Numbered from the stretch's first letter, positions 56,306-62,288 are shown. The stretch is 64,000 nt of DNA from IMGVR_UViG_3300034072_002211:213445-277444; one strand, 5' to 3'. Program-made: numbers and translations. Notes: a model not told the origin generated them from the letters alone.

Positions 56306-56453
56306 GAGTGCGACGGGCAAGAGATCGTCTATGGATAGGAGCCTGCTGCTCTACCACCTGAGCTACCCGATCCAGCTTGCGGCCTTGACGGGGTGGGGAT
56401 CGAACCCACGACCTTCTGGTTAGTTAACCCACGGACTACGGCCCGTCGCACTC
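56306..56453 (-). ncRNA. Y RNA, YrlA-like with permuted tRNA domain
   Basis: 12-bp terminal stem, GGGCCG..GGGTTA..CTTG; T arm precedes D arm. Confidence 0.8.
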
Positions 56454-56505
56454 ACTATATGGCAGAACGGACGGCTTGTTGTCAAGCCGTCCGTTGAATG
56501 GACTC

Positions 56506-56568
56506 GAGAGCAAGTTGGTTAGCCTGGGGGTTCATCTTCAAAAGGATAACCCAAGCCATTCGGCTCTC
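56506..56568 (-). ncRNA. Y RNA, minimal Ro60-binding stem only
   Basis: GAGAGCCGAATGGCTTGGGTTATC..CAACTTGCTCTC. Confidence 0.75.
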
Positions 56569-56573
56569 AAGTT

Positions 56574-56649
56574 TGGTGGATGTTGTAGGGTTCGAACCTA
56601 CGACCCGCTGATTAAGAGTCAGCTGCTCTACCGACTGAGCTAAACATCC
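56574..56649 (-). tRNA. tRNA-Lys(CUU)
   Basis: Loop CTCTTAA, CCA. Confidence 0.95.
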
Positions 56650-56702
56650 GTTGTGCCACCCTCTTAGACGAGGGCTGGTGGGGCGTCAACCGTTTTTCTT
56701 TG

Positions 56703-56785
56703 TAGGGGCGGAGAGATTCGAACTCTCAAAAACCACCGATTTTAAGCCGGCAGGGTGTTCCGGTTTCCCACTAGGTCACGCCCCC
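56703..56785 (-). tRNA. tRNA-Leu(UAA), atypical arms
   Basis: Loop CTTAAAA; long D region and short variable arm. Confidence 0.75.
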
Positions 56786-56788
56786 ATG

Positions 56789-57049
56789 TCAGTTAATGCA
56801 GAACCGCTTGGTTAAGCCGCGGTCCTCGAGGATCTCGACTTTGACGCCGCGATCCCGCATTCCCTGGATCATCCTGTCGAACTCATCGAACCGCTCCGAA
56901 ACAGCACGAGCCTTGAAGCAGTTGGGGCTCTCAGAATAAATTACCACGGGATGCAACTTCCTGCTTTGTTGTGCGTTCGTCAGCCCAATACGTGGTTTCA
57001 CGTAGTCGCGCAAGTCACTCGGATGAATTCTTTGGTTGTGCTTCCGCAA
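56789..57049 (-). CDS. hypothetical protein
   Basis: ORF. Confidence 0.55.
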   Translation of the reverse strand: MRKHNQRIHPSDLRDYVKPRIGLTNAQQSRKLHPVVIYSESPNCFKARAVSERFDEFDRMIQGMRDRGVKVEILEDRGLTKRFCIN

Positions 57050-57548
57050 TGACTTTGAGGAGCGCCTCTTCCATTAGCTGATTGAGCGTGATATCTCGAG
57101 CATGGGCCTGCTTGAACAGTTCAAGAAGAACATCATCTTCTAGATCCAACGGAATCTGGACCCGCTTATCGAAGTCCTCGTTCTTGAGCATCGCAACGCC
57201 CTTTTCCAGCAGGTCTTCAACAAGTTCCAGATCCACGTAGCTGAAGCCTTCCCAGGCTTCATCCTTGGCTACGTTGCGGCTCTCTGCTTCGTTGAAGATC
57301 GCATCCTTGTAATCAGGATTGATCCAACGGTAGGCATAGTCATGCTCAGAATCCAACTCGGTGGTCGCAGTGAGCTCGATGACTTCCTGAGTCTCGCGGT
57401 TGAAGACAATCTTCATAGCCGCAAAACCATTCACATAGCCAAGCACCTGGCCATTCTCATAAGAGCGCCACTGGTGCTCCCAAGCATCGTTGATCCGATA
57501 CTCGACGGCTTCCATGAACTGCTGAAGGATGCTCACACTAGACCTCAC
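57015..57548 (-). CDS. hypothetical protein with C-terminal RHH-like motif
   Basis: LFKQAHARDITLNQLMEEAL. Confidence 0.7.
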   Translation of the reverse strand: MRSSVSILQQFMEAVEYRINDAWEHQWRSYENGQVLGYVNGFAAMKIVFNRETQEVIELTATTELDSEHDYAYRWINPDYKDAIFNEAESRNVAKDEAWEGFSYVDLELVEDLLEKGVAMLKNEDFDKRVQIPLDLEDDVLLELFKQAHARDITLNQLMEEALLKVIAEAQPKNSSE

Positions 57549-58501
57549 TCTTGGGTTCGATCTAGTCCGCTCTCACTAGACTGCCGCTCACCAGAAGTCA
57601 ACCTACTTTCTGCGAATGCGATATACTGGTCATCTACGTCAAAGCCCAAGTAGCTGAGACCCTCAGCTTGAGCAGCTACCGCACTCGTTCCAGTGCCAAT
57701 GAAAGGGTCCAAGAGGGTGCCTGAGACACCCGAGAACTTGATAGCGCGTCTGACTAGCTCAACAGGAAAAGTTGCCGGATGAGTGCCCCTCTGGGCGCCA
57801 CGATCAGCAATCGTTTCGTATGGGATATACCACACGTTTCCTGGGCAATGAAGGTCCTCTACGGGCTTGGCCTTTGCGAGCTTGCGCGCGAGTGCGTCCT
57901 CGAGTTCTTGCTTCTCAGCGGGGCTCGCTGACGCATCAAAGGCGCGCTTGTTCTCGAAGCCCATCTTCTTGATCAGCTTGCCGCGCCAACGAGAACTCTT
58001 ATCCAAGTTGCCCTTGTCTGCGTAGGGAACGCCAATCGCCGTCTTCTGACATGGGACGTTGCCAGTCTTCGTGAAGTGGAAGAGATGCTCCCACGTGGGG
58101 TTCGCGAACCGCTGACTGTTGATGGGCTTATAATGACCCAACTGGACATCGTCGATCGCAATACTCTTGACCCACGTGAAGTTGTTCTGGAGGATCATGT
58201 GCTTGCGCGCAACATTCGCGACATCCATGCCCACCCATGGGTCCACGTTGCTGTAACCCATATTGAGGAAGAAGTGCCCCTCGGGTTTCAACACACGAGC
58301 AATCTGCCCAAAGATATCAGAGAGCCAAGCCAAATAGGCTTCACGTGGTTGATTGTCCTCGTAGGCACCATACTTGATATCGAGGTTATAGGGCGGGCTG
58401 GTCACGCAAATGTCAATGGACTCTACGTCGAGTGCCTTCATGCCCGCGAGGCAGTCCTGGTGGATGATCTTGTTCACCAGATAATTATGCCTAGAAGTCA
58501 T
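57545..58501 (-). CDS. N4-cytosine/N6-adenine DNA methyltransferase, beta class
   Basis: TSPPYN, HPATFP, DPFIGTGTS; start moved to ATG 58501. Confidence 0.9.
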   Translation of the reverse strand: MTSRHNYLVNKIIHQDCLAGMKALDVESIDICVTSPPYNLDIKYGAYEDNQPREAYLAWLSDIFGQIARVLKPEGHFFLNMGYSNVDPWVGMDVANVARKHMILQNNFTWVKSIAIDDVQLGHYKPINSQRFANPTWEHLFHFTKTGNVPCQKTAIGVPYADKGNLDKSSRWRGKLIKKMGFENKRAFDASASPAEKQELEDALARKLAKAKPVEDLHCPGNVWYIPYETIADRGAQRGTHPATFPVELVRRAIKFSGVSGTLLDPFIGTGTSAVAAQAEGLSYLGFDVDDQYIAFAESRLTSGERQSSESGLDRTQE

Positions 58502-58535
58502 GGAAAAAGCGGCACCAGCCGAAGCCAGTGCCACT

Positions 58536-58623
58536 TGGAGGATAGCGGGGAACTCGAATCCCAGTCCCTTGCGGGACCCAACCCGTTTCCAGCGGGTGCC
58601 GCACCCCGTGCGGTTCACTATCC
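58536..58623 (-). tRNA. tRNA-Ser(GGA)
   Basis: Loop CTGGAAA, long variable arm, CCA. Confidence 0.9.
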
Positions 58624-58624
58624 A

Positions 58625-58715
58625 TGGAGGAAGGCTGCGGTCTCGATCCGCAAGCGGCTCATCACCGCTCCAACTGGTTTCGAATCAGTGCCAGGCCCCG
58701 CCTGGTTAACCTTCC
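58625..58715 (-). tRNA. tRNA-Ser(CGA)
   Basis: Loop TTCGAAA, long variable arm, CCA. Confidence 0.9.
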
Positions 58716-58719
58716 ATGT

Positions 58720-60991: not shown

Positions 60992-61064
60992 TGGAGAATA
61001 TGGGAATCGAACCCATCGCAGCGATGGTGCGAGCATCGCCTGTGTAACACCCAGCACATTCCCC
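60992..61064 (-). tRNA. tRNA-Ala(CGC)
   Basis: G3-U70, loop CTCGCAC. Confidence 0.85.
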
Positions 61065-61071
61065 AGGAGAG

Positions 61072-61230
61072 TCAAGACCCAAGGCCGGCTTCCGCACTTC
61101 CGGCACCAACATGGAATCCGGCGTTCAGTGGCCGGCCCATCAGCCCAACAAGTCAATCACTAGCCTATGGGGCGAGGGGCCTAGAAACCCAGCCTTCTCC
61201 ACATATTCGGTCATGACCCCATGGGTCTTG
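61072..61230 (-). ncRNA. unassigned small structured RNA
   Basis: CAAGACCCA/TGGGTCTTG terminal stem between tRNAs. Confidence 0.4.
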
Positions 61231-61302
61231 GTGCTTCCACTGAGAATCGAACTCAGGTTTACGGGTTACGAATCCGTTGTCCTACCACTGAACGATAGAA
61301 GC
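61229..61302 (-). tRNA. tRNA-Thr(CGU)
   Basis: Loop TTCGTAA, CCA. Confidence 0.9.
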
Positions 61303-61303
61303 A

Positions 61304-61379
61304 TGGTGCCGGTGAAAGGACTCGAACCCTCAACCTTCTCCTTACAAGGGAGTTGCACTACCAATTGTGCTACACCGGC
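61304..61379 (-). tRNA. tRNA-Thr(UGU)
   Basis: Loop CTTGTAA, CCA. Confidence 0.95.
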
Positions 61380-61427
61380 AGGTTGTCCAAGGACTCAAAC
61401 AACAGTGCATCCGTGCTGTCAAGTCCT

Positions 61428-61503
61428 TGGTGCTCCCGGTAGGAGTCGAACCTACGACCTACGCCTTCGGAGGGCGGCGCTCTATCCACTGAGCTACGGA
61501 AGC
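61428..61503 (-). tRNA. tRNA-Arg(CCG)
   Basis: Loop CTCCGAA, CCA. Confidence 0.95.
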
Positions 61504-61504
61504 A

Positions 61505-61575
61505 TGGAGCCCCTACTAGGATTCGAACCTAGCCTCCAGCGTTCGAAGCGCCGGGTCCTGTCCACAGGCAGAGGC
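61505..61575 (-). tRNA. tRNA-Arg(UCG), short D arm
   Basis: Loop CTTCGAA, CCA; 71 nt. Confidence 0.8.
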
Positions 61576-61582
61576 AAGTTAG

Positions 61583-61657
61583 TGGTGACCCATACGAGAT
61601 TCGAACTCGTGTTAACGCCGTGAGAGGGCGTCGTCCTGACCACTAGACGAATGGGCC
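61583..61657 (-). tRNA. tRNA-Glu(CUC)
   Basis: Loop CTCTCAC, CCA. Confidence 0.95.
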
Positions 61658-61666
61658 GTTAGAGGG

Positions 61667-61936
61667 TTACGCGCTGGGCTTCTTGTCAGCGATTGCCTCA
61701 GTGGTCGCAAAGCGCAACAGGGCAGTCGTGATACCAACGAACGCAAAGATTGGACCATACCACGCATCAGGGATCACACCCTGCATCTGTGGCAAGTAGG
61801 TCTCTGCCGCACCGAAGACAGCAACAGCGCCACCGAACCAAATCGTCTTCGATTTAGCGGTTGCGATGAGCCAGTCCTTGGCGTTGAAGCCAAATGCTTT
61901 GAGCACTTCGAGGGCGGGAGCAACATTGTATGCCAT
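61667..61936 (-). CDS. holin-like membrane protein
   Basis: KSKTIWF followed by two TMs and a basic tail; TAAATA late promoter. Confidence 0.55.
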   Translation of the reverse strand: MAYNVAPALEVLKAFGFNAKDWLIATAKSKTIWFGGAVAVFGAAETYLPQMQGVIPDAWYGPIFAFVGITTALLRFATTEAIADKKPSA

Positions 61937-62225
61937 GGGAAATCCTCCTGGGGTTTCCCATATTTAGCTTGACCAGCGGGTTTCCACTCTTCCCGCACCA
62001 TCGCATGACAGTCCCAACATGAGCTCCGTCCCTCGTCCAAGGAGGGCAGCGACTACAGCACCAGCCCCTATAGCCAATACAGCGTAGGCTTGATCAAGCA
62101 ATTTCACTACCAGTAGGGATCCACATTTCCCTACACCGAAGAGCACCCGGTTTCGCTGACCCGACTTTAACCTGCTTTGCTCTTCACTTGCTCCAGGCGG
62201 TCAGTGCCTTGGCAGTAAATTAGAA

Positions 62226-62288
62226 CATGGGCAAGTTGGCAAGCTTGGGGTTCATCAAAGCAGGATAACCCAAGCCATTCGGCCCATG
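62226..62288 (-). ncRNA. Y RNA, minimal Ro60-binding stem only
   Basis: CATGGGCCGAATGGCTTGGGTTATC..CAACTTGCCCATG. Confidence 0.75.

Follow-up and report, generated by a model that had tools for sequence, protein, structure and literature searches.

Candidate Y RNA genes interspersed in the tRNA array of a large tailed phage that encodes its own Ro60

We analyzed a 64,000-nucleotide stretch of phage DNA, IMGVR_UViG_3300034072_002211:213445-277444 (hereafter the window), and found that a dense array of tRNA genes within it contains seven Y RNA elements, Y1 to Y7, all on the minus strand and spanning positions 56308-62289. Both Ro60, a major autoantigen of lupus and Sjögren syndrome, and its Y RNAs are conserved from bacteria to humans. 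The comparisons described below make it very probable that the seven elements are real Y RNA genes, specifying RNA partners of Ro60, and that they reside in a tailed phage of approximately 468 kb that encodes a Ro60 of its own. An earlier reading of this DNA, made from the sequence without database searches (the sequence-only reading), had placed seven copies in this interval, and all seven are recovered here with refined coordinates. Its count holds for the window and understates the set, since four further copies lie beyond the window end and a twelfth lies beside the Ro60 gene.

The seven elements share a common frame. Read 5' to 3', one strand of a closing stem is followed by GCCGA, 5-12 nt, GGGUUAUC and a variable middle, after which come (A/C)ACUUGC and the other strand of the closing stem. 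Y1 varies from this frame in having GCCGU, UUAAC within GGGUUAAC, CUCUUGC and a 3' end that carries CUCUUGCC, and Y6 has CGUUAUC in place of GGGUUAUC; the base after GCCG is thus A in six of the seven copies and U in Y1. Folding and a stem scan indicate that the ends of each element pair with one another across 63-150 nt. In all seven copies the 5' GC-[C]-GA pairs with the 3' UU-GC around a bulged C, and next come an internal loop, a second helix, 8-9 bp long, and UUAUC. When the window was scanned for a 5' motif and a 3' motif flanked by at least 4 bp of complementarity (the closing stem), exactly seven matches were returned, all on the minus strand. The same scan of 200 windows simulated with a first-order Markov model gave a mean of 0.04 matches and a maximum of 1, and a stricter pattern found two matches in the window versus 0.01 expected. 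The observation of seven elements is therefore real and not a product of chance.

The module that defines these elements is found beside Ro60 genes in other phages. A pattern scan of IMG/VR gave 122 matches, of which 105 lacked a closing stem (mostly chance) and 17 had one. At eight of these 17 loci (L040, L047, L070, L020, L095, L069, L023 and L006), a Ro60 homolog with 40-46% identity to gp220, the Ro60 of Mycobacterium phage Bxz1, lies directly beside the match. We aligned 28 bare elements, that is, elements consisting of the module only (alignment A2), and observed that 86% of cells pair, with a covariation score of 0.424 versus 0.150 for shuffles, none of 500 shuffles reaching the observed score. 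The second helix, which was unused in selecting the sequences, shows double changes in seven of its nine pairs. A covariance model built from A2, referred to here as R1, was then applied to 80 phage loci picked solely for encoding Ro60. It returned 67 matches in 41 of the 80 loci, every one on the Ro60 strand and mostly no more than about 700 nt upstream of the gene, and no matches in approximately 880 kb of control phage loci. Given that the R1 matches sit upstream of Ro60 on its own strand, we take the module to be a Ro60-linked Y RNA module. These comparisons give good support for assigning the seven elements to the Y RNAs and for regarding some of them as YrlA-like, with a permuted tRNA domain, and the identity proposed by the sequence-only reading is upheld, the same module with covarying helices being present upstream of Ro60 in dozens of phage contigs. 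Its remark that bacterial loci typically carry one or two Y RNAs is roughly right, but sets of up to four or five tandem copies upstream of phage Ro60 are common among the 80 loci; because of these sets, the copy number in the array is less exceptional than it would otherwise appear.

In four of the elements (Y1, Y3, Y4 and Y5), the strands of the Ro60-binding stem enclose, in order, a T arm, a closed acceptor-like stem and a D arm. The T arm consists of a 5-bp stem and a UUCGANY loop, and the acceptor-like stem follows it directly, with 7 bp in Y3, Y4 and Y5 and an irregular form in Y1. Two spacer bases precede the D arm, the first being a U8-like U in Y3, Y4, Y5 and most orthologs, and the D-arm loop contains GG. 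In their predicted folds these four copies share the architecture of YrlA, which is that of a tRNA with an open anticodon stem and a closed acceptor end (PMC4201824; bioRxiv 10.1101/312249). Five such domains had been counted previously; Y6 leaves that count, as a small hairpin (60904-60915, 4 bp with a 4-nt loop) stands at the position of the D arm, while the Y6 ortholog in locus L022 has a normal D arm. The two bare stems of 63 nt described in the same reading are Y2 and Y7, for which the covariance model gives 63-65 nt, a length that rises to 65-71 nt if the whole closing stem is counted. Full tRNA-like, T arm plus acceptor-like stem only, bare and non-tRNA multi-hairpin modules all occur in this phage, and so the repertoire is indeed diversified.

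The region is full of tRNAs, and Chen et al. warned in 2014 that tRNA dimers can score as YrlA (PMC4201824), a known source of false positives. One could thus argue that the elements are chance matches or tandem tRNA genes misread as YrlA. ARAGORN calls no tRNA over any of the seven elements, and none scores above the Rfam tRNA threshold, the best sub-threshold score being 18.6 bits for part of Y1. Furthermore, the sequence upstream of each T arm is a strand of the Ro60-binding helix rather than a tRNA 5' half. Because no tRNA is called and the outer strands form the Ro60 helix, these elements are not dimers mis-scored as YrlA. With seven matches observed against 0.04 expected and with the ends of the elements pairing, we reject this explanation as far as sequence analysis reaches and regard it as extremely improbable.

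The structure of the longer elements is conserved among relatives of the phage. Among 16 members of the Y1-Y8 groups, 15 have a 7-bp acceptor-like stem immediately after the T stem, and its sequences are wholly different between orthologs with pairing retained through compensatory changes, as in the L286 ortholog of Y3. Orthologs of Y4 in L283 and L284 retain both the acceptor-like stem and its ACCA, and Y5 has orthologs in L283, L284 and L022. Alignment A4 takes in 20 long elements of five related phages and shows 94% pairing overall; the T stem pairs at 100%, with both sides changed in four of its five pairs, and the closing stem and second helix pair at 99% and 83%, respectively. GCCG and UUGC are invariant in A2 and A4 while the flanking stems covary. 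Likewise, GUUA is invariant in both alignments, and the YUAY position reads UUAU in six of the seven copies and UUAA in Y1. The five phages that bear these orthologs share only 70-80% DNA identity. In Y4, Y5, Y6 and Y8 the acceptor-like loop begins with ACCA or UCCA, followed by 5-10 nt; the long Y RNAs that adjoin Ro60 at nine other phage loci showed no such NCCA loop. Prerequisites for recognition by tRNA enzymes such as TruB, DusA and RNase P that are visible in the sequence are the T-loop UUCRA, the GG of the D loop and the 7-bp stem with NCCA.

These data bear on whether the elements might be non-functional or structural by-products of the array, such as decayed tRNA dimers or processing spacers with no Ro60 role. 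The four NCCA-bearing loops and the head-to-tail tRNA context do point to an origin in dimers, some orthologs are without NCCA or a D arm, and the elements do not adjoin Ro60. Against this stands the near invariance of GCCG, GUUA and UUGC amid covarying stems in five phages of such limited identity. In addition, the bare copies contain no tRNA remnant, yet they score 64-67 bits with R1, whose training set is largely made up of Ro60-adjacent RNAs of other phages. We therefore consider a by-product origin without function very unlikely. A separate candidate explanation for the tRNA-like domains, that they are recent copies of a resident tRNA, was rejected, the best partial match being between the Y5 D arm and tRNA-Glu. 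The positions of the Y RNAs and of the tRNA genes that adjoin them are given in Table 1.

Table 1. Positions of the Y RNAs and adjoining tRNA genes. Positions are those of the window unless a locus (L) or the scaffold is named. Y8 to Y11 lie 1.6-4 kb past the window end, each 0-3 nt after a tRNA.
Feature	Position	Strand	Parts or placement	Evidence
Y1, YrlA-like, 144 nt	56308..56451	-	T arm 56393-56409; irregular acceptor-like stem-loop 56366-56392; D arm 56348-56363	Motif-and-stem scan; 13-bp closing stem
Y2, bare Ro60-binding module only	56502..56572	-		R1 63.8 bits, E 5e-13; fold
tRNA-Lys(CUU), encoded CCA end	56574..56649	-	1-nt spacer before Y2	ARAGORN; Rfam tRNA 74.6 bits
Y3, YrlA-like, 134 nt	58720..58853	-	T arm 58790-58806; 7-bp acceptor-like stem 58770-58789; D arm 58753-58767	R1 27.2 bits; Rfam YrlA partial, 24.2 bits
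Y4, YrlA-like, 151 nt	58859..59009	-	T arm 58939-58955; 7-bp acceptor-like stem 58916-58938, loop begins ACCA; D arm 58897-58913	Motif-and-stem scan, 9-bp closing stem; Rfam YrlA 20.4 bits
Y5, YrlA-like, 143 nt	60340..60482	-	T arm 60420-60436; 7-bp acceptor-like stem 60394-60419, loop begins UCCA; D arm 60376-60391	R1 34.1 bits, E 1e-5
tRNA-Arg(GCG)	60793..60869	-	7 nt downstream of Y6	ARAGORN; Rfam
Y6, partial tRNA mimic, 112 nt	60877..60988	-	T arm 60945-60961 (4/5 pairs); 7-bp acceptor-like stem 60917-60944, loop begins ACCA	R1 19.7 bits
tRNA-Ala(CGC)	60991..61064	-	2 nt before Y6	ARAGORN
Y7, bare Y RNA	62225..62289	-		R1 66.5 bits, E 1e-13
tRNA-Met(CAU)	62292..62367	-	2 nt before Y7	ARAGORN; Rfam
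Y8	L001:2328-2460			
Y9	L001:4274-4344			
Y10	L001:4430-4550			
Y11	L001:4633-4701			
Y12, ~158 nt	L165:5237-5394, scaffold ~411.1-411.3 kb		~560 nt upstream of Ro60	

The window contains 21 tRNA genes by ARAGORN, all on the minus strand like the Y RNAs, and Rfam confirms 20 of them. Beyond the window end (loci L001 and L004) there are 32 more tRNAs and four more Y RNAs, of which Y8 and Y10 have a T arm and an acceptor-like stem and Y9 and Y11 are bare. The whole array is approximately 30 kb long and holds 56 tRNAs (ARAGORN) with 11 Y RNAs among them. In total, the phage has at least 12 Y RNA genes, the 11 in the array being arranged head-to-tail on the tRNA strand; beside Ro60 in other phages the number is far lower, from one to five. 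Seven of these 11 begin -1 to 3 nt after the preceding tRNA, Y3 begins 5 nt after Y4, and for four of the 11 the next tRNA follows 3-7 nt downstream. Many tRNA pairs in the array are likewise separated by 1-nt spacers, and 43 of the 56 tRNAs encode CCA. Given that the spacers between Y RNAs and tRNAs are 0-7 nt long, tRNA-processing enzymes probably excise the Y RNAs. For example, 3' processing of tRNA-Lys(CUU) would generate the 5' end of Y2, and a cut by RNase P at the 5' end of tRNA-Arg(GCG) would set the 3' end of Y6. A scan for promoters and terminators showed no difference from shuffled sequence.

This layout is kept in four relatives, which are huge-phage contigs (L283, L284, L285/L022 and L286), one example of a kept slot being tRNA-Leu(CAG), Y RNA, tRNA-Ile(GAU). 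Relatives of the scaffold include IMGVR_UViG_3300034073_003340, 3300034072_000926 and 3300031088_000008. More distant huge phages that share a small HisRS-like gene gave no R1 matches and showed no such layout. Most loci reached by way of the PRPP synthetase gene came from unrelated phages and had no Y RNAs, and a near-identity search of cultured phages returned tRNA-sized matches only. A bare Y RNA does lie between two tRNAs, with spacers of 0-3 nt, at L053:5317-5379, a position in a 42.9-kb contig from a different sample (IMGVR_UViG_3300005673_000043) in which no Ro60 was found in the 11.6 kb read. Embedding of Y RNAs among tRNAs may occur outside this clade.

We next consider the protein partner. 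In agreement with the sequence-only reading, the window itself has no Ro60 gene: no TROVE domain was found among the 10 large open reading frames (ORFs) scanned there, nor within 10 kb beyond the array. The best tblastn match of Bxz1 gp220 in the window (E 0.19, 40696-41052) falls on a dual-specificity phosphatase-like ORF and was rejected as Ro60. The window corresponds to approximately 213,447-277,446 of JGI scaffold Ga0310127_000018 (468,011 bp), and it is on this scaffold that Ro60, which that reading had proposed seeking in the phage genome, is found. Piece 002212 of the scaffold encodes a Ro60 of 579 amino acids (TROVE 149.5 bits, vWA_Ro60 175.9 bits), whose best solved relative is Deinococcus Rsr (2NVO, E 2e-127) and which also matches the Xenopus laevis Ro60-Y RNA structure 1YVP with an E value of 3e-106. 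The gene (L165:5956-7692, scaffold ~408.8-410.6 kb) is on the same strand as the array. IMG/VR splits the scaffold inside the tRNA array into 3300034072_002211 (the first 277,444 bp) and 3300034072_002212 (181,816 bp), and an 8.7-kb piece of the tRNA array (~277.4-286.2 kb) is omitted between the two entries. The end of the window is 100% identical to 3300034072_002211, and a 42-mer of the flank has an exact match in 002212, at the place expected if 002212 reaches the scaffold end. As a result of this split, analyses based on IMG/VR would not reveal that one genome holds both the Ro60 gene and the Y RNA array.

Upstream of the Ro60 gene lies Y12, in which the same Ro60 module flanks a non-tRNA middle of several hairpins; it is conserved in L180, L164, L170, L192 and L160, where the hairpins covary. 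The Ro60 gene is situated in the tail module (L165:2154-10872), with the sheath and tube genes on either side, and a GIY-YIG/NUMOD3 homing-endonuclease-like gene adjoins it. The leader of the Ro60 mRNA (L165:5890-5955) contains a circularly permuted version of the Ro60-binding helix, in the order AAC-CUUGC-stem, loop, stem-GCCGAA. This hairpin reaches the Shine-Dalgarno sequence or stops just short of it, 40-90 nt before the Ro60 coding region. Seven related contigs (L165, L160, L164, L170, L180, L192 and L196) carry it in nearly invariant form, and it recurs with compensating stem sequences at L147:731-753, L162:302-322 and L168:2060-2081. Ro60 may act at this leader helix to repress its own translation. 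Among cultured phages, the nearest relative is Sinorhizobium phage Phosso (PV764938.1; L319, 469 kb), which has the same order of sheath, Ro60 and tube genes and a Ro60 that is 52% identical; no R1 match was found in the two Phosso regions read.

The sequence-only reading had proposed that the repertoire redirects or sponges Ro60-PNPase/RtcB RNA repair of the host or phage. With a phage-encoded Ro60 on the same strand about 130 kb away, a role as cofactors of that protein is more economical than a sponge for host Ro60, and most likely the Y RNAs serve as cofactors of the phage Ro60 rather than as sponges. Alternatively, they could be decoys that titrate Ro60 of the host (Rsr) or whose tRNA-like domains occupy tRNA-binding enzymes of the host or defence nucleases that cleave tRNA. 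Titration would be favored by their many copies and by a tRNA array that is presumably highly expressed, and a host Ro60 is plausible if the host is also a rhizobium, as Phosso infects Sinorhizobium and Rhizobium etli carries YrlA (PMC4201824). Moreover, Hughes et al. suggested that YrlA's tRNA-like domain might competitively inhibit an anticodon nuclease (PMC7790460). However, this phage keeps its own Ro60, the same module stands directly upstream of Ro60 in many phages, and the diversity of effector parts fits adaptors better than a sponge with a single target. The tRNA-like domains would also be poor mimics for nucleases or toxins that act on the anticodon loop or acceptor end, because they have no anticodon loop and their acceptor end is closed. 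We judge titration to be unlikely, and the earlier interpretation as a whole to be partly supported.

Several observations weigh against the assignment of these elements as Y RNAs of the phage Ro60. The exact bacterial motif GNCGAAN0-1G is present in only three of the seven copies (Y2, Y3 and Y7), the other four having GCCGAC or GCCGUA. Constructs in which the tRNA-like domains were re-permuted with a dummy anticodon loop were accepted by ARAGORN in four of 15 cases, which is a weak test. R1 does not recover Y1 or Y4, even with filters off, and these two copies rest on the motif-and-stem scan, weak Rfam matches and orthologs, including a Y1 ortholog (L022:7510-7646) in which UUAUC and ACUUGCC are canonical. 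A distance of 127-139 kb separates the array from the Ro60 gene, whereas for published Y RNAs a position no more than 4 kb from Ro60 was a requirement. No gene for PNPase, RtcB or an RNA ligase was seen in the approximately 100 kb of scaffold read, out of 468,011 bp. Finally, none of the seven elements reaches the gathering score of the Rfam YrlA model (RF02553, 69 bits); at gathering thresholds Rfam reports tRNAs only in the window, and the metazoan Y_RNA model has no match there at E values up to 10. Of the two model searches that had been suggested, the one with YrlA does match Y1 below threshold, covering the full model with 31.7 bits (E 9e-4, relaxed threshold). For comparison, the YrlA-like element that adjoins gp220 in Bxz1, a phage whose own RNA is not named in PMC4201824, scores 32.5 bits. 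Since an element directly beside a phage Ro60 gene scores only this much, the Rfam model gives phage members scores that are too low, and a weak score for Y1 does not speak against membership in YrlA.

Reading the elements as Y RNAs of the phage Ro60, we compared them with known systems. YrlA is characterized by the motifs GNCGAAN0-1G and YUAY and by the order T arm, acceptor stem, D arm (PMC4201824). The YrlA RNAs of Salmonella, M. smegmatis and mycobacteriophages have their parts in the same order as Y1 and Y3-Y6, the D arm of Y6 being degenerate. The 7-bp acceptor-like stem of the array copies matches that of M. smegmatis YrlA, for which cleavage by RNase P and addition of CCA have been shown in vivo (PMC4201824). 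Unlike YrlA, the array copies are remote from Ro60, lie in a tRNA array and number many paralogs rather than one; four of them encode NCCA at the start of the acceptor-like loop, and their scores are below the Rfam threshold. Y2, Y7, Y9 and Y11 are module-only hairpins of 63-71 nt with a CGAA-type motif and a stem-bulge-stem form. From their descriptions, YrlB of Salmonella and M. smegmatis and Yrl1 and Yrl2 of Thermus phage phiLo are likewise short and without a tRNA domain (PMC12135203), but the bare array copies sit directly after tRNA genes and not upstream of Ro60, where equivalent RNAs are found in tandem at 41 of the 80 phage loci. The GC-C-GA/UU-GC helix with its bulged C resembles the vertebrate GGUCCGA that Ro60 contacts (PMC4201824), whereas the effector parts of metazoan Y RNAs are unrelated to those of the phage copies.

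Stable RNAs other than tRNAs also occur in the tRNA cluster of phage T4, where the small species 1 and 2 RNAs are released by tRNA processing; the copies described here add a Ro60-binding module to that theme. Circularly permuted tRNA genes are present in Cyanidioschyzon, and the array copies resemble these in having a 3' tRNA half, NCCA, a short linker and a 5' half in one transcript. Unlike those genes, they imply no circular intermediate and no functional tRNA product.

It is established that phages encode Ro60 and Y RNAs, including tandem sets beside Ro60. YrlA-like RNAs were reported in 22 phages in 2014, when mycobacteriophages with Ro60 were also said to carry YrlA (PMC4201824), and in 2025 the Ro60 of phage phiLo was shown to bind two phage Y-like RNAs and to form complexes with host PNPase (PMC12135203). 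This phage differs in the number of copies (at least 12), the separation from Ro60 with insertion into a tRNA array at tRNA-type spacing, and the NCCA-bearing loops. The location in the tRNA array is a more unusual feature than the copy number, and our literature search found no paper describing Y RNAs inside a phage tRNA array. The 2014 survey kept hits no more than 4 kb from Ro60 and discarded hits that overlapped tandem tRNAs (PMC4201824), and these filters would therefore miss Y RNAs embedded in an array.

These features suggest how the RNAs might be made and used. The Y RNAs would be transcribed together with the tRNAs and released by the tRNA machinery, through 3' maturation of the upstream tRNA and RNase P action at the downstream tRNA. 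The presence of NCCA in four loops closed by 7-bp stems suggests both descent from tRNA dimers and cleavage by RNase P. Because an NCCA loop corresponds to the junction of two head-to-tail tRNAs, and the array has so many closely spaced pairs, the tRNA-like modules probably arose from head-to-tail dimers in the array. RNase P could possibly split each NCCA-bearing copy into two paired halves, in the manner of M. smegmatis YrlA. Once released, the Y RNAs would bind the phage Ro60, and their varied middles could act as alternative adaptors for PNPase, a documented Ro60 partner in Deinococcus, Salmonella and phage phiLo, or for tRNA-elbow binders, one of which has been proposed for YrlA (bioRxiv 10.1101/312249). 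A likely purpose would be surveillance, decay or repair of structured RNA during infection. It is plausible that the RNA surveyed or repaired is the large tRNA pool of the phage itself, although no gene found in the roughly 100 kb read supports this.

A bolder scheme can be put forward, although as a whole we hold it to be doubtful. The array would generate new Y RNAs from tRNA dimers, and RNase P would cut Y4, Y5, Y6 and Y8 into two-piece, tRNA-shaped RNAs that have a free CCA end and are held on Ro60 by the former anticodon stem. A dozen distinct Ro60 particles would result, some of which would engage the CCA-adding enzyme, synthetases or RNA ligases to monitor or repair the roughly 56 tRNAs against host attack. 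Synthesis of Ro60 would be set by the Y-helix mimic in its own mRNA leader.

Other features of the region were noted. Gaps in the array hold tRNA-like sequences uncalled by ARAGORN at 56703-56785, 58624-58712, 60724-60791 and 61509-61575 (minus strand), and another is at L001:4702-4820. Among these sequences, two match the Rfam tRNA model at 30.5 and 24.4 bits, one has a mascRNA-like match of 21 bits, and in one an acceptor stem and T arm can be recognized by eye. Our count of tRNA-like RNAs in the array is probably too low. At 62409-62597 (minus strand) there is a 189-nt element with tmRNA-like ends, GGGGCCG...T arm...CGGCUCCA, and a possible tag frame, AKDRAIRSKIRRAA-stop; it scores 20.9 bits with the Rfam tmRNA model, below threshold, and is not called by ARAGORN. 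Away from the main array, the minus strand also has a tRNA with the anticodon CUA at 40190-40268 (amber suppressor type, labeled Pyl by ARAGORN) and a 96-nt tRNA-Ile(UAU) at 39701-39796. Genes for a class I lysyl-tRNA synthetase (12191-13885), a seryl-tRNA synthetase (46940-48301) and an NAD synthase (1058-2113), all on the minus strand, are present in the region. The short HisRS-like protein encoded at L001:5568-6017 (149 amino acids) is common to about 35 huge-phage contigs and is a useful group marker.

The elements described here form a series between a tRNA dimer and a Y RNA in which NCCA is retained, and this series bears on the proposal that Y RNAs originated from tRNAs. The co-location, and probable co-processing, of Y RNAs with a very large set of tRNAs, with the Ro60 gene elsewhere in the genome, offers a testable tie between Ro60 and tRNA metabolism. 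Since searches have been confined to 4 kb around Ro60 and hits in tRNA clusters have been discarded, the Y RNA repertoire of large phages may be underestimated.

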